Made by a program: the position numbers and the translations under genes. A model generated the notes under the pieces. It saw only the letters and a program-made list of their open reading frames with translations, was not told where the DNA came from and ran no database searches. A DNA stretch of 61,717 nt, filler included, from Choristocarpus tenellus KU-1152 (taxonomy: Eukaryota > Protista > Phaeophyceae), in the NCBI GenBank assembly GCA_964200185.2. It is 11 parts of 11 records of this genome, joined end to end, with 100 filler letters (N's around TTAATTAATTAA, not from the genome) between each part and the next. Parts side by side here need not be neighbours in the genome. Positions count along the whole stretch, not along the records: positions 29,812 to 38,774 come from CAXNAD020004160.1; 10 more parts are not named here. One strand, 5' to 3'. Below are positions 29,712 through 38,774 of this stretch, in pieces; position 1 is the stretch's first letter; each line of letters starts with the position of its first letter.

Positions 29712-30180
29712 NNNNNNNNNNNNNNNNNNNNNNNNNNNNNNNNNNNNNNNNNNNNTTAATTAATTAANNNNNNNNNNNNNNNNNNNNNNNNNNNNNNNNN
29801 NNNNNNNNNNNGTATCTGACCGCGCGTCTTATATATACAGTGTGTGGGTGATCCCAAGAAGGAACCTGTCCCTGACAGAGGGCATAATAATAAAATATTG
29901 GTGATGGTGTGAGTCTGTTGGATTGTAATTTGGTAATTTAAGGTGGAGTATAGATTTCAAAGACCCCCCAAATAACCAAACACCATAAAAATAGAAGTGT
30001 TTCTGTTTGACCTATAGGAAGTGATGTAACTTAATGTAGAATGGATGACATCTCCTTCCAAACAAACAAAGACAATCAATCTGTGTCCACCTTTTATTAC
30101 TTGAATGGAGTAGGTGTGGGAACATACGCACACATCATAATATCATCTATCCGAACTGTGACGCCGTCATCAGCGTTAAC

Positions 30181-32173
30181 ATGAGGCAGCTCAGATGGAA
30201 TGACTGCTTAGCTGCTTTAGGATTAATTGGAGTTGGTGGTGGAGCACCTACAGAGCTTCGACCACAATCTGAGCTCCAATCCAACTGCTTCAATTTTCCA
30301 GAAGATAACTTCAGTCCTTCAAACTGCGTAAAGTGTGAATATGGAACGAGTCCATACTTTCCCCTCCGCGTTGGAGACCGAGCAATCGATTTTACGTTGC
30401 ATGATCTGACAGGCCAGCCATGGAACCTGGCGGAGGCACTCAGCGAGGGGAAGCCGGTTGTTCTTATCTGGGGCATGTTCACATGCCCAGCATACCAGGG
30501 CTTGGGGACAGAGCCACCCTTCGATAAGTCGTCCTACTGGTTGGAAAGTGATACGGTAGGTACCTTCGAGTTTTCTGAAGTTTTCGTCGCCGTCTTACGT
30601 AGTCGGGTCGTCAGTGTCATGGCTTCACCCTCAGCCCCTGGTGATGTGGGTTCATTTTTGTGTGTTTTAGAACTAAAGATAGTTTGTCTTTCAGACTTAC
30701 CGCACTAAGCAACCCGATCTCTGGCTTCGTGTGGAATCCGTACATGTTTCTGTCCTATAACACCTTCCACTCCGTTAATACTGACAGGTTGAATTGTACA
30801 AAGACCGTGCTACGTTCGTGCACTTGTATGGTGCAGAGCCACACCCTATGATCCCCGACACAAACTTTGATAGTGGACGCCTTCTCCCCTTGTACTGGAG
30901 TGTGATAAGGCAACCGCTAACTTACGATGGCCGGTTAGAAATGGCACGTCGCACGCTTGATCTCACTCACCCCAATCAGGTGTGTGGTCGATCGAGTGGT
31001 TGGTTGATGGACTAAGACTGAGGGCATTTGATATTTTTAAGGAGTTGGGTCAGTGATTTGTTTATGCCGTGGTTTATTTATGCCGTGGTTCATGTGTGAT
31101 CTTGGATTTGGACTGTGAGGTTCTTCCATGTGTTGCGGATTTTCGTGACCAGTCCAACTAAGAACTTAAACCTTGACGCCCTCACCTCACACCTCTACGT
31201 TAATACCTGGATTTCTATGAGTATTTGATTTTGTGACCCTTTGCAGACGAAGAACTTGCTAATTGTGAACTACCTAGTCTATTTTTGTCTTCATTTATTA
31301 CGGTCATATTGTCACCACGACCCTGGCCAGATTTGTCGTTAAGACTAAGGGAAGTACTGTTGGAAGGTCCTGTCCATGGGCTCGGCCGAGCTATTCAATA
31401 TGGTGCAAATTTTTTCACCTGAATATCTCTCGGCTTTGAGCATTTTATCAACGGTTTTGCTTGATATTGATGGATCGAATGCCCTTCTCAGGCGTACCCA
31501 TTTCTGAATTGCATGAGGTCAAGATATTCATTGACGCACAGTCATACTTTAAATTTACCGTCTGAATTTGACGATGTAACATCCTATCCAATTATGTCAT
31601 AAACCTCAATCTTCACCCTCTCACTCCATACCTCTACACTATTTTCTTGTTTTTTTTTTGCGTCTGCTTCGGTGACCCCATAGACATAGCGAACCTAAGC
31701 CTATGTGGGCTGCCCATTTCTAGTTTTATTTTTCATTTATTCAGAATTGGGGTTAAGTGCTCCAGGTCGATGACCTGTGTTTTGAGACAAGTCCTTTTTA
31801 TTGGACTTTTGCGTGCACTTGTTTTAGCTGTTGAGATGATTTACTGTGGTGCTATAAGTAAGGAGACGAGTTGAGCGAAGAGAAATAGATCCTGCCACCA
31901 ACATAGAACTCTGTTCTATGCGAGAGATATCTCTCTCTGACCTATCGTGCCACACACACATCCCAGGTACTACTGCCTGACTATCTCTTAGGTAACCCCT
32001 ACAGTGAACTTGTGCAGCCTGTGTGGTGCACCTACGCTATGGGGGCGCGCACTGCAACCATTGTGGGTGAGGATGGAAGGATTGAATATCAACGGGACTG
32101 GCTGCAAACAGAGCGTCTTCAACAGGCCATCGATGCGTACTGGTCAAAAAAGCAGGGGGACAAGAAGACTTAA
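30181..32173 (+). CDS. Iodothyronine deiodinase-like thioredoxin-fold protein, Cys homologue, complete, 257 aa
   Basis: Three phase-0 GT-AG exons: 30181-30555, 30788-30979, 31967-32173. Motifs in deiodinase order: GDRAIDFTL; GKPVVLIWGMFTCPAY (cf. RPLVLNFGSCTUPPF); ATFVHLYGAEPHP (cf. DFL.IYI.EAHP); IRQPLTYDGRLEMA; LLPDY..N...VWCTY; IVGEDGRIEY. Active-site codon is TGC at 30484-30486. Confidence 0.85.
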
Positions 32174-34989
32174 AAAGGAGGGAGGTGCGGAGGGAATATG
32201 GGGAGGCGTTCGCACACCCTTGGTGTGAATTGTCGTATGGATAACCGACTCCTATCCTAAAGTTTTGACAGTTACTTTATGTTCCAGCGGAAAGTGCAAA
32301 GTGTCATGTAGTGCAGTTGGTGGGTATTTGTGCACACACTCACATACACCAGCATCAGTGTATTTTGGGACTTTTGTTGTTGCCTTTTGTGCATGTTTTT
32401 CTGTCGTTTTTACTTTTTTGCAGTTTAGATATATTTTTTGGGAGGTCAATAAGATTGATTCACATCTTAAAATGGGCGGATCTAATTGTAATAGTTGTGC
32501 AAGGATTAGCTCTTTCGTGGCGGTCTTGATATACTCAAGAGGATTGTGGAGAGATGGTCATGAAAACATTCGAGAGAGATGGGAGCATTTTTGGACAAGT
32601 TTGGGTGTCACGGTTGGATGTGTATAATGTGATCTGTTACAATGTGAGGGAAGAATTGTTGCATTTGGTTCTACACCACTAGTTCTGTTTCATCAGCAAG
32701 AATTCAGGCGATCTATGGAAGAGCAAAATATGTTGATATTTCCTCTAAAAACTAAGAGTATTTAGTGATGGTGATGAATCCAGGCAGAGCAGGAGCAGAT
32801 GCTGCTTGAAGTTGTTTCCCCTTATGATTGAGCATACAACATGTACTGATGCATGCTGAGGACAAAGAGGGGGTGGGAAGCAAGCACAGGTGAAGGCATT
32901 TTGTGCATGGGAGATACAGTGTGCTGTGAGCTCTGTTTCTCATCACCTACCTACCTGTGTGTTGCAGACTTGGTCTAGGGAGAGAGTACATACTATCGAG
33001 TCTTGCACAAGTTGATTGATATTATCAGGGTCAACTTTCTTCTCATTTAGGGTTCCCTCTTGAAATGGTTTTTAGGTACTAAGAATGGAGGAATCCAGTA
33101 CTCCTGGGTATACAGGATAATACAGCACAAATGTGCAAGAACAGTGAACAATCATGAAAAAAAACTATAGGCACTAATTCCATGATTTTGAGGGTGTGCC
33201 AGAGAGGTGAGAGTTCTCTGGTCCAGGATCCCATCACCGTCACCACACGGGTGACTTAAATCCATATCTGCAACATCACTTTCGCATCCCTGGCCTACAC
33301 TGTGATGTCAACTGTGGTTGGATGTGTAAGGCAACCGTGTTTGATGCATACCATACCTCTTACAACACACCTTGATGTGGATCAGAGATAGAGTCTTTGG
33401 CGTCAGATCCAAACCTTGCTTACATCTCAAGTGACTTGAGCATGCCATGTTTTACCTAAAACTCCTGTGCTTGGTGAAATGCCCCTTCACAAATACTTTT
33501 TTGTGCCCAAGGACAGGTTCCCCCCTCATGGCCTCCACTTTGAATCTTACATACCATGATTCCTTAGGAATCTACAATTTTCTGAAGGTATGTGAGGTGT
33601 ACAGTCAGACTTGAGGATGTTCAGTTGTTCTACATGTATTGACGAGTACTTAGTACGATTGCCTAGAAAAATTCAGACCTGAACTACAATATTTGCTTTA
33701 ATCCCTGTGTGGACTTGTGCTGTTGGTGCAGAGTAAGCCCTGACTCAGGTTCTGTTGTTTCGAACAACTCAGAAATGTATCTATACCTGCACCGAAACTT
33801 GCCTAGTGGAAACAGACGGAAGAATCTCAGTGGTCCATATGGTATACCTTGCCTGCACAACAGTGACGATTCGTCATAATGGAGACTCAATGGTACAGTA
33901 ACGACTGGACTCAGCCACTAATGTTGTTGTGGAATGTACCCTTTTTATAAAGTCTTGATATCGATGGGAATCAAACTGTGAAATTCGTGCGAAGTATTTG
34001 ACTCAATTGATTACCGAACTACAAGGACACTATTGGATTGCCCAATATTGTTGTAGGTTAATATTACCAATTTTTGTTGTCTTGCTTCTCTTTTTAGGTC
34101 TTTTCTGTCTGAGCACCTGCTCACTCACGTTTGCGCATCCGTGGGCTCTCACCTTTGACCAAAATGTCTGGAGTACAGAATGCAAAGAGTCTTATGTAAA
34201 TGAGAGGTAGGCAGGTTTGGAAACTTTTGTGTTCCAAGTAATCTTTTTTACCCTCTGCAATACACTCTGTTTCATTCCTTTATATGCCCAATAGTGTACT
34301 ATGTGAAGTAGACATTCCCCCTTTCCACACATAAAGTAATATCACAATTCAGCAAAGGTTCTTTCTACAATTGTACAAACTTGTATCACTTTCTTGGGAT
34401 CCTTAAAAAACATTTTCTTGCCTACCTTTTCATTGTATTGGCTCGAAAACATATTGCCCTTCTCTGCTGGACGTATACGTGCATTTATTTCGCCTGGCGT
34501 GTGATTGTGCAGCTGCTGTGAGAGGCAGCGAATTCCATCCCCTTCTCTTGTACATTTGTCGTCAGGTCTTGACTGCCATAATCTCATCTCCCAATTACCA
34601 GGGATATGATATTCATGCTCCCTTACGCCTTTTGTTGAAGATACAACATATTCAAACCTTTTTCTTTCCCTCCTCAATCTTTTTCATTTGCTTAAGCAAA
34701 CTTTTAACTGTTGTAAAGTGGAACTACTTGCTAAATGTTCGTACCTGTGCAAGCCACATGACACTTCTTTTTGCACGATGACATGCCCTAATGCTGCAAA
34801 TCTTTTGTCATCTTAATGTTGGATCGCCTATCCTTTTCGTCCATTTAGGTATAGTCAATCTCCTCATTGCTTCCTTGAGTCTATCCTCTGCGTTTTGCAA
34901 AGCCTTAATGTCCTTTTTCCTCTAACAGACCTTGACCTTACCGCTCAGTTGATACAAATAATGTTTTGATGTGTTGCACTCCAACGGTT

Positions 34990-35620
34990 CTCGTGATATT
35001 TGTGTGGGTATGCCTTGCACATACTTTCCTCTAGAGAGGAGGCATGAGGCCAACAGGTGCCTGCTTGCCGAGGGCAGGAGGCATATCGATACTTGATATG
35101 CCCTCACCTACACTAGGGTGTGAGGACATGTGAAACCAGCACATGCTGATGGTGAAACAACTTTGTCAATTATGAAGGGGAATTGGCATCCCTTGCACTA
35201 TGGACGATGGCAGCCCGTTAACATTAGACCAGAGCTTCCACATGGATGTAGTCTTGAATCCTGGGGCACTTTGAGACGCTGGCTCAGCTCTCTAACAGGA
35301 CAAAGGCTTCTAGATGTTGCTTTCACAGAAGTCTGACCAGACTGTCATCTGCCCCACTCATCCACCAGCAATGGTGTACCTGCTGCCGCAGCTGAGGCTC
35401 GAAAGCGCATCCACTACGAGAGATCCTTTGATCTTTGTTGTTTAAATCTCAACACCTTTGTGGTGAAAGGTTTTCAGCACCTTGGAAAGCAATCAGAACG
35501 TTTCTTGGATGAGTTAGCCATGTGCAGTAGGGGGAAGAGATACTGCAGAAGAAAGGGAAGAATCACAACAACCTGTGATGTGCCTTTGTGCTGAACAGCC
35601 CGGTATTTCCAGCTAAAAAT
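34990..35620 (+). mobile_element. Degenerate 3' part (restriction-like endonuclease) of a CRE-like non-LTR retrotransposon
   Basis: Reads LLDVAFTEV*PDCHLPHSSTSNGVPAAAAEARKRIHYERSFD...TFVVKGFQHLGKQSERFLDELA, matching the RLE pattern D-V...AA..AE..K..Y...F.VE.FG.LG. Confidence 0.68.
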
Positions 35621-36519
35621 CCCTCTAAAGAGTTATCTGTGTAGTTATGGTACCATAAAGGCTCACACCAATATTAACAGTCCCTTTTACCCTTGCCATG
35701 TGGGTGGCCAACTCATGAAGGAAGCTATCTGCTTGCTTACTATGGCACCCAAAACTTTGCATCAAGGTATTGAGCTAAAAATTATGAAGACCAAAAGATC
35801 CCTCGCGGTGAGAGCGCACTTGACTCTTGGCTACTACAGCAGCAACACCATTTCTGGTGGATGGGTTGATCAGGTGGCAAGCTGCCTGGACCTCTGTAGT
35901 AGCAACATCAACAAGACCTTTGTCTCAATAGGGGGATGAATCAGCTTCGAGTAAGGCCCTAACATGGAAGACCACATTCATACCGAAGTTCCTATCCACC
36001 AAGGATGACCTCTTATCCTCCATTGTGTCCATTCCCTTGCGGATTGACGCAACCATTTCACCATTGGTGTGTGCTGGCATACTTTTCCTCCCACCCTATA
36101 GGAAGTGCATGCGCATCAGGTGTTTGCATCTTTCCTCCCTCACTGCCTAAATTTATTGTTATGTTGGTAAATACTTCTGTGATTGTACTGTACATAGCGT
36201 AGCCATATTGGCATGTCAGTACACCTTTCTGCAATACATATTGTATAGTTACACCTTTCGATATAATTATGCTATGTTTTGTCTATACTGTGGTATGTTC
36301 TGTATATTTCACCCAGTCAGTCTCCACCAAAAGTCTCTAGTACTACTTTTTGTGGTCACGGAATCCCTGTGGAAATTGATCCACGCCTTTCACTCTTGTT
36401 TCATGAACAAGTGAACCAGTGACAACCCACTACTCTGTTATGACAAAATCATCAGTATATAAGAATCCTCTGTTGTGATAAAAGTACTAAAAAATCGGAA
36501 GTAATGGACAATCACAATC

Positions 36520-38330
36520 CACCGCTATTTTGGACAACACCTCATTTTTTCCGAGAGACCTACTTGCTGGCAGTGAGGTTGAGCTCCATAGAAGGAATTT
36601 GGCGTGGTTGCTCCAGGGGATGTGAGGTAGCCCATGCCTTGCCCACACTGACTCCTGTGGTGGGCTAGAGCCAGCGAGGAACCTTTCCTCTGTTCGTCAA
36701 TTGCTGAAGGAAGGTTGGTGGGTTGTGTCCAGAAGGGGTTCAAGCAGATCCTGTTGAGTAATCGTGTGGCTTCATGTTGATCCCTCCGTGTTATCCCAGC
36801 ATCTTGAGCTGCCAAGGTTTAAGGTCTGGGGTGGGAGTGGTTGTACCTACCCAGTTTACTGAGGCTCGACCAAAAAATCCCTCCCAAAGGGACTTCTGAT
36901 GAGATAATGGCAGAGATTGACAATCCTAGCGCGTGCTCTGTGGGGGTCATAAAATTACCTGTGTCAAGGTCTCTCCATGGGTCCCTTGTTGTCTAGCCAG
37001 AAGGGTGGAAGAGTGGCCTCCAATAATCTAAAAAAAGCTGCGTGTTGGCAGTGCCCCATAGAGGACAGGCCTAGCCCACCCGGACTTGTGGGCATCCGTG
37101 CCTGGACTTGTTGGCTTACTTTTAGGTAAGAGACCAATAATTTCTCATCAATGGACTCAGTTGCCTCGGTCACATATACCACCTCTATGACCTCCCCTAA
37201 AATCCTTAAGGAGGGGCTGTCTGCTTGCTCCATGGTGGGATCTGCAAGGTGCAGGGGAATGACCCTCACCAGGTAACCCAAGTGGGAAAAGAGGGATGAG
37301 GAATTGAGGACCCGGGAAACCTGCTGTCTTCTATCTCACTCAGGCGTTTAGTAAGCAGTTTTGAGTCTGAGCTGTCAATCATACCTTCCATGTGGGCCTG
37401 GAAAAAAATACCCATCCTCATCAATGCCACAAAAGGGACAAAAACATTTGGTCTGGAGTGGTAAGGGGTTACACTTTGGAGGGTGTAGGTCGGTGACCTT
37501 GGGGTAGTGAAGTAATTGTCTTCTTCACATTTGAGACTGTTCCCACCTCAAACAGGTCAGTTTTTTGCTGCTCCAAAGTAACTATTGCGGCGCGGTTGAT
37601 CTCTTTTGTGGACGTGGACAGATCAACTACGCGCTGGGAAAAAATCCCATAGGGTCCAACCGTGGACTAGGTCTGCTGAAGGAGTTTCTTTGGCTGTGAA
37701 AATAAAAGTAAGGATTCAAGGGGATCTTCTTGTTGTGCTCCCATCGTTGAGGACATGTTTTTTATTCCCCTCCAGGTCTAGTGGAAAAGAAGATCAATTG
37801 CGCCCCTGTATACCTTCCCAACATATGCGAGGAGTACTCGCAGGACCTCAGGGAGAGTCTTGATGAAATTTGAGCGGTGTACACTGTTGAAGGCGTTCTT
37901 GGCATCTAGGCTGATCATCCATTCCCCATACCCATTCCCAAGGCGGATTTCCAGCAGAGCTTACTCGATCTCTTTTGGGGCCCCTGCTTCAAACTTCCCC
38001 TTACATCTGAAATGTTCCTCTAGGTAGTGGTACAAATCAGTATAGAAAGCTGAAGCGCATGCCCTTATCAAGGAGCCAAATGCAACTGGACGGCACTTCT
38101 ACCCTACCGCTGAGATTCTGGATATGGTGTGGAACTCCCAGAACTCAGAGGGTAATGGGTCTGGGGAGGTGTATGCCACCTCCCATAGCTTGGCAAACTC
38201 CTTTGCTACATCCTCATGGCCGACATCATGTCGTGATGGCTGATTGTGTAAGGCTGGGGCACATCCCATTGGGACCTGGTTCTGAGTTGCTGTTGGTGCA
38301 CATGAATGCCATTCGTATATGAGGTGGATA
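36520..38330 (-). mobile_element. Degenerate CRE-like non-LTR retrotransposon reverse transcriptase region
   Basis: Motifs in order on the minus strand: LPSEFWEFH..SRISAVG*KCRPVAFG (~38150-38075), ISLDAKNAFNSVHR (~37916-37875), QARMPTSPGGLGL..HAAF (~37105-37033). Many stops and frameshifts. Confidence 0.8.
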
Positions 38331-38593
38331 TGTATTCCCCCTTCGGAGGGCAATACCACTGTCCCCTAGATCCTATCCCTTTCTCCCCTGCTCTTTGCTG
38401 TATTTTCATGTCACCGTACATTATTTCGTTTTCATTAACGTGATTCTCTCCGTCACTTTCATCTCCAATCCACATATAAAACTCGTACATTAGTAATTCC
38501 GTATATCAATATAATATTTATTACGGCCTTGCAAGAGTCCATCCAAGATACCACCTCATTCACCATATCCTCCACATTGGGAAAGTTTACGAA

Positions 38594-38774
38594 GGTTCAA
38601 AGTATCTGGGTGGGGGGGGGGGAGGTGTCGGATTCAGTTTTTCACCCTTTTTTCGATTTTCACTTTTTTGGTGTGATTTGGTCGCACGTGTCGGATTTGA
38701 AATATCAGCAAAAAATAGTTGTTCGACAGAAACGGATGCCCCCTCACAAACCCCCCCCCCCCCCCCCCCCCCCC
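38594..38774 (+). mobile_element. Family B-related MITE, truncated by contig end
   Basis: GGTTCAAAGTATCT-polyG start, ending in a poly-C run at the contig break, consistent with the opposite G-rich TIR. Confidence 0.5.

Follow-up and report, generated by a model that had tools for sequence, protein, structure and literature searches.

In mouse Dio3, the proton relay of the animal iodothyronine deiodinases consists of Ser167, Thr169, Tyr197, Glu200, His202 and His219 (PMC11592359). Deiodinase-like proteins also occur in bacteria, where selenocysteine (Sec) and Cys forms were first described from the Sargasso Sea (PMC1088965). The non-animal members of the family have no known biochemical role (PMC1088965, PMC13188914). 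Cys forms can be active dehalogenases, since the non-selenoprotein (Cys) deiodinase of amphioxus deiodinates triac, according to Klootwijk et al. 2011 as cited in PMC8143656. That enzyme is an orthologue of the animal DIOs with thyroid-hormone derivatives as its substrates, and it is likened to the protein presented here by description, not by sequence. A thiol-based debromination is carried out by Bmp8 of the marine bacterial bmp cluster, which is encoded next to brominases (PMC5577590).

The gene compared here with these systems lies in a window of 61,717 nucleotides (filler included) of Choristocarpus tenellus KU-1152. Positions 29812-38774 of the window are identical to the NCBI contig CAXNAD020004160.1 (8,963 b), on which the gene is annotated at 370-2362, corresponding to window positions 30181-32173. 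The earlier note had described an intact gene of three exons and 257 amino acids from a probable brown alga, and this description was exact: the host is indeed the brown alga C. tenellus, and the three exons translate without internal stops into successive segments of the public protein P0049 (NCBI 'unnamed protein product [Choristocarpus tenellus]'). The coordinates of all features are collected in Table 1.

Table 1. Features of the deiodinase-like gene of Choristocarpus tenellus (window coordinates).
Feature	Position	Strand	Basis or remark
Exon 1, residues 1-125	30181-30555	+	stop-free translation; equals residues 1-125 of P0049
Probable signal peptide, codons 1-24	30181-30252	+	hydropathy heuristic
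Cys36 codon TGC (NCF), proposed disulfide partner of Cys210	30286-30288	+	co-variation
Cys49-x-x-Cys52 (NCVKC)	30325-30336	+	lineage-specific: only Choristocarpus and Discosporangium
Cys102 codon TGC, catalytic position, homologous to Sec170 of mouse Dio3	30484-30486	+	aligned to the Sec-to-Cys position of 4tr3
Alpha1 insertion QGLGTEPPFDKSSYW, residues 106-120	30496-30540	+	interrupts helix alpha1 just past the active site
Intron 1, 232 nt, phase 0	30556-30787	+	GT..AG (GTAGGT..TGACAG)
Exon 2, residues 126-189	30788-30979	+	stop-free translation; equals residues 126-189 of P0049
Intron 2, 987 nt, phase 0	30980-31966	+	GT..AG (GTGTGT..TCCCAG)
Exon 3, residues 190-257 and stop codon	31967-32173	+	stop-free translation; equals residues 190-257 of P0049
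Cys210 codon TGC (VWCTY), proposed disulfide partner of Cys36	32027-32029	+	co-variation
Stop codon TAA	32171-32173	+	

Exon 1 encodes an N-terminus resembling a signal peptide, an N-terminal extension that includes Cys36, Cys49 and Cys52, a peroxiredoxin (Prx)-like beta module, and the active-site loop WGMFTC(102)P followed by the alpha1-helix insertion; taken by itself, this exon is matched by 39 protein clusters (E 2e-44 to 2.5e-16). Exon 2 contributes Tyr139 on strand beta2, the E142-P-H144-P motif, the long loop of the deiodinase type and the helix start Q167-P-x-T-Y-x-x-R174. Strand beta3, the VWC(210)TY helix, strands beta4 and beta5 and the C-terminal helix are encoded by exon 3. All motifs quoted in the earlier note (WGMFTCPAY, the alpha1 insertion, YGAEPHP, QPLTYDGR, NCF, NCVKC, VWCTY and a hydrophobic N-terminus) are present. 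A short 16-nt tandem repeat occupies positions 31053-31090 within intron 2.

The contig holds this one gene only; it lacks long ORFs downstream, and one of its ends is poly-C. The ORFs at 32174-38774, including a reverse-transcriptase-looking peptide on the minus strand (37778-37918), had no match in a Pfam scan. A small, repeat-rich contig of 8,963 b with such an end and no second gene might carry an unexpressed or decaying copy, and thus a functionless gene model. This explanation is very improbable, given the open frame, the canonical splice sites and the presence of all family-invariant residues in the Choristocarpus protein. The Discosporangium orthologue shares 63-73% identity per exon and has both introns at identical positions, the first of which is also consistent with the Ascophyllum gene model. 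Divergence from this orthologue amounts to a pN of 0.20 and a pS of 0.58-0.91, synonymous sites being saturated, and relatives are present in MMETSP transcriptomes. The gene is real, intact and under purifying selection.

A search of 1.84 billion proteins retrieved 395 cluster representatives at E<=1e-3, of which 34 reached E<=1e-30. Orthologues at 50-65% identity occur in at least eight other brown algae; besides the Choristocarpus/Discosporangium pair, kelps, Fucales and Ectocarpales have the gene. The orthologues form one starred clade in the tree, in which Choristocarpus and Discosporangium are sisters. Relatives are also found in the unicellular ochrophytes Pseudopedinella and Aureoumbra as well as in sediment bacteria; since these ochrophytes and bacteria have no known iodine accumulation, the family is not tied to that trait. 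The neighbours of the Ectocarpus orthologue are without Pfam records.

Assignment of the protein to a family depends on the profile used. P0049 has no match to Pfam PF00837 (T4_deiodinase; gathering threshold 27 bits) at E<=10, and three orthologues score 17.4, 21.0 and 25.6 bits, below the threshold. Among 67 relatives, 38 match PF00837 at E<=0.01, and some bacterial ones exceed the threshold (27.4-42.7 bits). The Pfam matches of P0049 itself are both sub-threshold: AhpC-TSA (PF00578) with 19 bits against a gathering threshold of 26 bits, over profile positions 1-33, and Redoxin with 13.9 bits. NCBIfam NF038285 (deiodinase_rel) matches P0049 with 39.8 bits (E 3.6e-10; model positions 177-294 of 347) and all seven brown-algal proteins of one scan with E 2e-7 to 2e-13, as well as Ascophyllum P0041 with E 8e-11. 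As these matches are partial and reach 31-50 bits against a curated cut-off of 250, they indicate homology of the catalytic domain and not equivalog membership. Scans of the single exons against Pfam and NCBIfam returned only weak, short matches to AhpC-TSA and deiodinase_rel. A Pfam comparison of the spliced protein, proposed in the earlier note, thus gave no match to T4_deiodinase and a sub-threshold one to AhpC-TSA; the deiodinase signal came from NF038285 of NCBIfam.

Profile comparisons reach further. The brown-algal profile aligns with that of the Pfam-positive bacterial relatives over 203 columns in hhalign (probability 100, E 3.4e-40). Against the PDB, the profile of the whole family has mouse Dio3 (4tr3, E 1.3e-16) and Dio2 (9h48, E 2.8e-12) as its best sequence matches, followed by ResA and Prx at about 1e-6. 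With a brown-algae-only profile, no PDB family was significant (Dio3, E 0.057; BCP, 0.011), so that superfamily membership rests on transitive and structural evidence. The ResA model matches the Choristocarpus protein with E 0.086, and the Atlas neighbours are PF00837 clusters. The predicted structure combines a thioredoxin fold with a Prx-like beta module at the N-terminal end, and its nearest neighbours in three dimensions are solved deiodinases.

Dio3, Dio2 and the algal protein have in common a long post-beta2 loop that is missing from other thioredoxin-fold families. Exon 2 aligns with Dio3 residues 197-229, whereas the alignments of ResA and Prx end before that region. Within it, residues 140-174 align with Dio3 198-225, E142, H144, P145, Q167 and R174 of the deiodinase-specific insertion, the loop-D region between E-x-H-P and Q-H-R-x-x-x-D-R, being kept; the predicted model shows a confident 31-residue loop followed by a helix. 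The E-x-H-P and Q-x-x-x-x-x-x-R elements of this loop are kept family-wide. BCP/PrxQ and AhpE peroxiredoxins as well as TlpA/ResA lack a loop of this type, and their alignments span only the N-terminal third of the profile. The superfamily identity claimed earlier is borne out by the PDB ranking and the hhalign alignment. Judged by these comparisons, the protein is a thioredoxin-fold member of the deiodinase superfamily, on the branch with bacterial 'deiodinase family' proteins, and very probably a redox enzyme with Cys102 as its catalytic residue.

Cys102 lies in the active-site loop WGMFTCPAY (residues 97-105), where helix alpha1 begins. T101-C102-P103 pairs with T169-U170-P171 of Dio3 in the alignment, so that the catalytic residue occupies the same position of a T-[U/C]-P motif. 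The TGC (Cys) codon reported at the Sec position is correctly placed, and bacterial relatives have Sec at exactly this point. Four of the six residues of the proton relay are kept (T101, Y139, E142 and H144, equivalent to Thr169, Tyr197, Glu200 and His202), as is Arg225; YGAEPHP comprises residues 139-145 and QPLTYDGR residues 167-174. In contrast to Dio3, Ser167 is replaced by Met99 and His219 by Pro168; Scytosiphon and Ascophyllum have His at the latter position. Most of the 67 relatives share the relay Thr, Tyr, Glu and His.

Further differences from Dio3 and Dio2 concern the overall architecture and substrate binding. Identity is about 20%, and the algal protein has Cys in place of Sec, some 35 additional N-terminal residues with a probable disulfide to the core, and a predicted signal peptide in place of a membrane anchor. 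None of the thyronine-binding residues of Dio3 (Arg275, Trp207, Phe258) nor the distal Cys239 is conserved at the aligned positions of the brown-algal alignment, and Cys168 is not kept either; Arg232, near the position of Arg275, varies among orthologues. Thyronine is not expected as a substrate. An insertion of 10-13 residues relative to the mouse enzymes interrupts helix alpha1 and appears in the predicted model as a loop between helices 103-106 and 119-129. The segment of residues 95-146 accordingly has 52-55 residues in brown algae and close kin versus 40-50 in bacterial-type relatives. Most other brown-algal copies have a Cys inside this insertion, a candidate resolving Cys that Choristocarpus lacks.

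A classical CxxC oxidoreductase of the TlpA/ResA/DsbE kind was rejected, as the active site reads C-P-A-Y, with one Cys. Alternatively, the protein may be a secreted thiol peroxidase or scavenger of hypohalous acids that cleaves no carbon-halogen bond. Cys102 would then react with H2O2, HOI or HOBr in the cell wall to form a sulfenic acid or sulfenyl halide, protecting against, or buffering, the oxidants made by or fed to vanadium haloperoxidases. Such a role is somewhat unlikely: the Prx signature PxxxTxxC is absent and Thr directly precedes Cys as in deiodinases, deiodinases rank above peroxiredoxins in both profile and structure searches, and the deiodinase loop is retained throughout the family.

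The N-terminus suggests where the enzyme would act. By a hydropathy heuristic, an n-region (MRQLRWND) is followed by an uncharged h-region of 16 residues (residues 9-24) and then by GGA/PTE. Every orthologue has such an uncharged stretch of 11-20 residues directly before a conserved LRPxSEL block. By the same heuristic, an animal-DIO-like transmembrane anchor was rejected, the hydrophobic stretch being just 16 residues long with the conserved domain directly behind it. Plastid targeting was likewise rejected, as the conserved domain starts right behind the signal peptide and leaves no space for a transit peptide. Among 58 relatives, Cys36 and Cys210 are both Cys in 47, both non-Cys in 10 and mixed in one (Fisher p 2e-10, ignoring phylogeny), a co-variation that implies an oxidising compartment. 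The second Cys motif, Cys49-x-x-Cys52, lies at the start of a short helix in the predicted model and is missing from most other brown-algal copies. The extra Cys residues are thus better explained, as far as the alignment indicates, by one structural disulfide (Cys36-Cys210) plus a lineage-specific CxxC. The secretion regarded as possible in the earlier note is plausible in view of the signal-peptide-like N-termini and the co-varying pair, and a secretory or extracytoplasmic location is likely.

The closest relatives outside the ochrophytes are the bacterial deiodinase-like proteins. Homology extends over the full length, with 30-38% identity and phmmer E-values down to 1e-23. Both groups have the N-terminal C-F-x-x-P block, the Cys36/Cys210 pair, E-x-H-P, Q-[PA]-x-T-Y-x-x-R, N-P-V-W-C-T-Y-G and extracytoplasmic signals. 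The bacterial forms mostly read G-S-x-T-[U/C]-P and E-A-H-P, whereas the ochrophyte clade has G-M-x-T-C-P, E-P-H-P and the alpha1 insertion; the algal gene also differs from the bacterial genes by its introns. The suspicion that the protein is closer to these than to animal DIOs was right: it matches NF038285 and not PF00837, and QP/QA is the usual form across the family.

The catalytic codon of 30 bacterial relatives is TGA (Sec) in 21 and Cys in nine. The TGA is followed by conserved in-frame protein sequence and a SECIS-like hairpin with compensatory changes in five of its seven pairs. Sec forms were looked for in the ochrophyte clade and none was found. In the unrooted tree, a bacterial pair (P0080/P0096) falls inside the 36-row starred clade holding all ochrophyte sequences, and P0080 has the signatures GM-x-TCPAYQ and EPHP in common with them. 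The old horizontal transfer suggested earlier fits this placement, in either direction.

The P0080 gene (locus L037) lies immediately downstream of a pair of genes for flavin-dependent halogenases (PF04820, 82.8 and 39.2 bits). This is the sole contextual hint at halogens. The arrangement resembles that of Bmp8, a Cys-based dehalogenase beside flavin-dependent halogenases, as an analogy of context and chemistry and not of sequence or fold. A metagenome scan with the P0080/P0096 alignment for a second linkage gave one locus (L043), with no halogenase upstream, and the L037 halogenases found nothing at any other locus in tblastn. The P0096 contig begins at the P0096 gene itself. All-against-all ORF clustering across 34 loci, together with Pfam scans of ten adjacent genes, revealed no recurrent bacterial neighbours; those found comprise DnaJ, SDR, HTH, a PKD-repeat protein, ATP-grasp, aldehyde:ferredoxin oxidoreductase and NFACT. 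Among bacterial relatives there are lipobox-like N-termini and fusions to tetrahaem cytochrome c, EF-hand, ubiquitin-like and secretion domains, and the Atlas neighbour clusters carry T9SS secretion tails.

Such heterogeneous neighbourhoods and the varied roles suggested by the cytochrome c, EF-hand, ubiquitin-like and secretion-domain fusions would suit a deiodinase fold reused for other redox chemistry, be it a secretory thiol-disulfide or protein-repair oxidoreductase or a reductase of Se, As or S electrophiles. The absence of the thyronine-binding residues and the additional CxxC with which a short helix begins in Choristocarpus agree with this, and no substrate is known for any family member outside animals (PMC1088965, PMC13188914). 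The single active-site Cys, as opposed to the CxxC of TlpA, ResA and DsbE, makes it quite unlikely, as does the widely conserved Thr/Tyr/Glu/His relay: a relay that protonates carbon speaks against simple disulfide exchange because it would be unnecessary there.

Taken jointly, the evidence gives nearly an even chance that the protein is a secreted Cys-type enzyme of the deiodinase superfamily and a candidate dehalogenase of iodinated or brominated organic compounds. The N-terminal signal peptide would take the protein into the secretory pathway, and a Cys36-Cys210 disulfide would fix the extra N-terminal extension to the core; together they would place its action in a non-cytosolic site such as the ER lumen, vesicles or the cell wall. 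Animal deiodinases differ in this, as their N-terminal transmembrane anchor keeps the catalytic domain out of the secretory lumen. The Cys102 thiolate may attack an electrophilic atom, most likely a halogen on an aromatic ring, while the relay would protonate the carbon. The sulfenyl halide so formed would be resolved by a thiol with release of halide. Characterised members of the family work by this chemistry, and by analogy with them, reductive dehalogenation, put forward in the earlier note for iodide recycling, is proposed tentatively, at clearly less than even odds. Among the observations that count against it, the oxidising compartment has no obvious thiol reductant, Choristocarpus lacks the candidate resolving Cys of the alpha1 insertion, two relay residues and the thyronine-binding residues are not kept, and the halogenase neighbourhood was seen once, with nothing recurrent around the 33 other bacterial loci.

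No stronger accumulators of iodine than the brown algae are known. The vanadium haloperoxidases with which they halogenate have been studied in detail (PMC2866472). A literature search found no named brown-algal enzyme that takes halogen off aromatic compounds and no paper on a deiodinase-like gene in brown algae. It is conceivable, if improbable, that this conserved, secreted and selenium-free ochrophyte enzyme constitutes the reductive half of a halogen cycle in the cell wall or secretory pathway. Iodine or bromine would be stripped from halogenated tyrosines and phenolics, or 'I+' accepted as a sulfenyl iodide, and the halide would go back to the pool that vanadium haloperoxidases draw on. 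A bacterial lineage of selenoproteins, in which some members are fused to tetrahaem cytochromes and at least one is encoded next to flavin halogenases, would be the source of the gene.

The gene offers a specific candidate for cloning and is conserved throughout the brown algae. The Sec/Cys site, the disulfide, the extracytoplasmic signals, the cytochrome c fusions and the one halogenase neighbourhood turn the role of the deiodinase fold before thyroid hormones into a testable question. If the protein is a peroxidase or another redox protein, it would represent an ordinary new subfamily of the thioredoxin-fold superfamily. If it does serve a halogen cycle, thiol- or selenol-based dehalogenation by this fold would be ancient and widespread at sea, and not an invention of animal thyroid-hormone metabolism.

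Part of the window is base-for-base identical to NCBI contig CAXNAD020004160.1 (GCA_964200185.2), on which a single gene is annotated. Its product, P0049, is a public 257-aa protein recorded as "unnamed protein product [Choristocarpus tenellus]". The exon translations were compared one by one with P0049, and all three are identical to the matching stretches; whole-protein analyses were run on the public P0049 sequence. The observation of an intact three-exon gene in the earlier note is confirmed, all motifs quoted there are found in P0049, and the "probable brown alga" is indeed one. Like Discosporangium, Choristocarpus is a member of the earliest-branching lineage of brown algae. In the remainder of the contig, the longest ORF does not exceed 120 aa, none of the eight ORFs tested matches Pfam, and a run of about 24 C closes the contig.

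Coordinates of the algal gene, its contig and the bacterial loci discussed
Feature	Position	Strand	Remarks
Contig CAXNAD020004160.1	window 29812-38774
Sole annotated gene	window 30181-32173 (contig 370-2362)
Exon 1	window 30181-30555	+	translation equals matching P0049 stretch
Exon 2	window 30788-30979	+	translation equals matching P0049 stretch
Exon 3	window 31967-32173	+	translation equals matching P0049 stretch; stop TAA
Introns 1 and 2			GT..AG; 232 and 987 nt
Catalytic-position codon	window 30484-30486	+	TGC
Contig remainder	window 32174-38774
46-aa peptide	window 37778-37918	-	L-D-A-K-N-A-F-N-S-V; resembles a reverse-transcriptase motif, unconfirmed
Halogenase/P0080 neighbourhood	L037:681-4665		NCBI GCA_024449685.1, contig JAANST013696059.1; 68% GC
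In-frame TGA, examples from bacterial contigs L002-L034	L007:4205-4207; L003:593-595; L032:3900-3902
364-aa protein beside bacterial P0100	L001:4886-5980		also on a Logan SRR14699975 contig

The earlier note had proposed weighing the Pfam model T4_deiodinase against AhpC-TSA. P0049 alone has no match to T4_deiodinase and by this curated model falls outside strict membership; its Pfam matches, AhpC-TSA (19 bits, first 33 profile positions) and Redoxin, are both sub-threshold. Three orthologues score 17-25.6 bits with T4_deiodinase against a threshold of 27, and a profile of brown algae only is significant against no solved structure. Relatives and profiles, however, favour deiodinases. The NCBIfam model for the bacterial "deiodinase family protein" matches all seven brown-algal proteins scanned together (E 2e-7 to 2e-13) and also Ascophyllum P0041 (E 8e-11). 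An exhaustive phmmer search returned 395 cluster representatives, many of them full-length and 30-47% identical, and 38 of 67 full-length relatives match T4_deiodinase at E<=0.01, some above its threshold. With hhalign, the brown-algal profile aligns to Pfam-positive bacterial proteins over 203 columns (probability 100, E 3.4e-40). The profile of the 67 sequences matches mouse Dio3 at E 1.3e-16 and Dio2 at E 2.8e-12, E-values that lie ten and six orders of magnitude below those of ResA and peroxiredoxins, and the deiodinase alignment continues through the segment following strand beta2, which ResA and peroxiredoxins lack. The AlphaFold2 model from the same alignment is confident (pLDDT 93.8, pTM 0.88), and the neighbours found in the ESM Atlas by language model and by structure are PF00837 clusters, mostly bacterial. 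Judged from these comparisons, homology of P0049 to the deiodinase family is firm, and its assignment to the deiodinase superfamily is supported.

P0049 was mapped on mouse Dio3 by profile alignments, with residue roles taken from PMC11592359. The proposed Cys at the Sec position holds, Sec170 aligning with Cys102. Thr169, Tyr197, Glu200, His202 and Arg225 are kept as Thr101, Tyr139, Glu142, His144 and Arg174, the last invariant in 67/67 relatives. Ser167, Cys168 and His219 are replaced by Met99, Phe100 and Pro168, and the brown-algal alignment conserves no equivalent of Trp207, Cys239, Phe258 or Arg275. This residue-by-residue mapping indicates that the chemistry-bearing core is largely kept but the residues that hold the thyronine are not. 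At the His219 position, Scytosiphon P0051 and Ascophyllum P0041 do have His, in a Q-H-R-S-Y-Q-D-R segment resembling the animal Q-H-R-S-L-E-D-R, whereas nearly all other members have Pro or Ala.

Bacteria supply the strongest evidence for a catalytic Cys102. Of 30 loci, which span Myxococcota, Thermodesulfobacteriota, Anaerolineae, Dehalococcoidales, Gemmatimonadota and other phyla, 21 read TGA in frame at precisely this alignment position and nine encode Cys; the TGA context, G-S-F-T-TGA-P-P-Y/F, closely resembles the animal F-G-S-C-T-U-P-P-F. Downstream of the TGA the protein sequence stays in frame and conserved, and a conserved hairpin follows 14-35 nt past it; compensatory changes at five of its seven pairs match what a bacterial SECIS element should show. 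The TGA-bearing relatives are probably selenoproteins; no Sec form was found within the clade holding the algal sequences. In seven Sec-type loci (L002, L003, L005, L007, L009, L011, L024) the ORF also encodes four CxxCH motifs ahead of the deiodinase-like domain, and the bacterial proteins P0102 and P0122 score slightly under the thresholds of Cytochrom_c3_2 and Cytochrome_C7. These features suggest a fusion protein in which a tetrahaem cytochrome c precedes the seleno-deiodinase-like domain and would supply electrons in the periplasm; no paper mentioning deiodinase and multihaem cytochromes together was found. The 364-aa protein, which belongs to no Pfam family, lies 20 nt upstream of P0100 on two independent contigs and was seen beside none of the other relatives examined.

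Exon 1 alone matches 39 protein clusters (E 2e-44 to 2.5e-16), and full-length orthologues with 50-65% identity to P0049 occur in Ascophyllum, Undaria, Pylaiella, Ectocarpus, Scytosiphon, Discosporangium and others. Both introns lie at exactly identical codon boundaries in Discosporangium. Between this alga and Choristocarpus, synonymous sites have reached saturation (pS 0.58-0.91) but non-synonymous sites have diverged by 0.20 per site, so the gene is under purifying selection. Ascophyllum nodosum has at least two paralogues, P0041 and P0052, on different contigs. In the maximum-likelihood tree, eight brown-algal proteins and P0052 form one starred clade, with Choristocarpus and Discosporangium as sisters and the Ectocarpales together, a pattern suggestive of vertical inheritance among brown algae. 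MMETSP transcriptomes of the dictyochophyte Pseudopedinella and the pelagophyte Aureoumbra contain relatives, and these ochrophytes, the brown algae, many transcript-like contigs and the bacterial pair P0080/P0096 share a starred clade (98) that lies among bacterial forms with Sec or Cys. The old horizontal transfer raised in the earlier note, between bacteria and an ochrophyte ancestor with later intron gain, fits this topology, but the tree, midpoint-rooted and including neither an outgroup nor animal deiodinases, shows neither direction nor event. A sister group (P0061, P0063-P0065, P0068, P0069, P0072, P0074), on mostly transcript-like contigs of about 1.2-3.2 kb, comprises proteins of 296-527 aa with G-M-Y-T-C-P-A-F-Q-G-Y-Y and, in most, long C-terminal extensions without Pfam domains; its hosts are probably marine protists.

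The suggestion of secretion gained support. Every orthologue has an uncharged, signal-like stretch of 11-20 residues directly before the conserved L-R-P-x-S-E-L block, so that a plastid transit peptide would not fit and plastid targeting was rejected. Bacterial relatives have lipoprotein-like N-termini, and Atlas neighbour clusters have T9SS secretion tails. Cys36 (N-C-F) and Cys210 (V-W-C-T-Y) are kept or lost as a pair: 47 relatives have Cys at both positions, 10 at neither and one at a single position (Fisher p 2e-10, shared ancestry ignored), and the bacterial P0080-type relatives without them also lack a signal peptide. On these grounds, the pair is read as a structural disulfide of an extracytoplasmic protein. 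N-C-V-K-C (Cys49, Cys52) is confined to Choristocarpus and Discosporangium. Six of seven other brown-algal copies, and Pseudopedinella, instead have a Cys about 15 residues past the catalytic one, in the alpha1 insertion (position 117; P-P-W-D-K-C-G-Y), and no CxxC at 49-52. Position 117 is Ser in P0049, Ser or Ala in the Choristocarpus/Discosporangium pair, and not Cys in P0052. The insertion Cys is a candidate resolving cysteine, and the contrasting patterns may reflect its relocation; that Cys49-x-x-Cys52 takes over this role would be speculation.

To our knowledge, characterised members of the deiodinase family are dehalogenases only. They include one Cys form, the amphioxus deiodinase (as cited in PMC8143656), which favours dehalogenation, as does the retention of the relay residues that protonate the leaving carbon. 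The nearest bacterial kin gives one contextual hint. P0080, which falls with all ochrophyte sequences in one starred clade of 36 rows, has G-M-x-T-C-P-A-Y-Q and E-P-H-P in common with the algal proteins, though neither a signal peptide nor Cys36 or Cys210. Two flavin-dependent halogenase genes on the same strand (PF04820, 82.8 and 39.2 bits) precede the P0080 gene at a distance of 55 nt, an arrangement recalling the bmp cluster, in which a brominase is paired with a thiol-debrominase (PMC5577590). Against dehalogenation, this neighbourhood is a single case, not repeated in L043, the locus found with the P0080/P0096 alignment, and other bacterial neighbourhoods examined have no pattern; the family also occurs in organisms not known to hoard iodine, and an oxidising compartment would not obviously supply a reductant. 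A serious rival is a thiol peroxidase or hypohalite scavenger in the cell wall: the brown-algal wall is rich in H2O2 and haloperoxidase (PMC2866472) and the deiodinase fold derives from peroxiredoxins, but the Prx motif itself is missing from P0049. A reductive dehalogenase is a reasonable hypothesis for P0049.

That bacteria encode deiodinase-like proteins of both Sec and Cys type has been known since 2005, with function unassigned (PMC1088965, PMC13188914), and algal selenoproteomes list a DIO family (PMC7539508). No paper on a deiodinase-like gene in brown algae was found, and the public records of P0049 and its orthologues give neither a name nor a Pfam domain. The algal proteins are rated as an ochrophyte branch of the known deiodinase-like proteins that is free of selenium, probably secreted and stapled by a putative disulfide, and that has Met for Ser and the alpha1 insertion.
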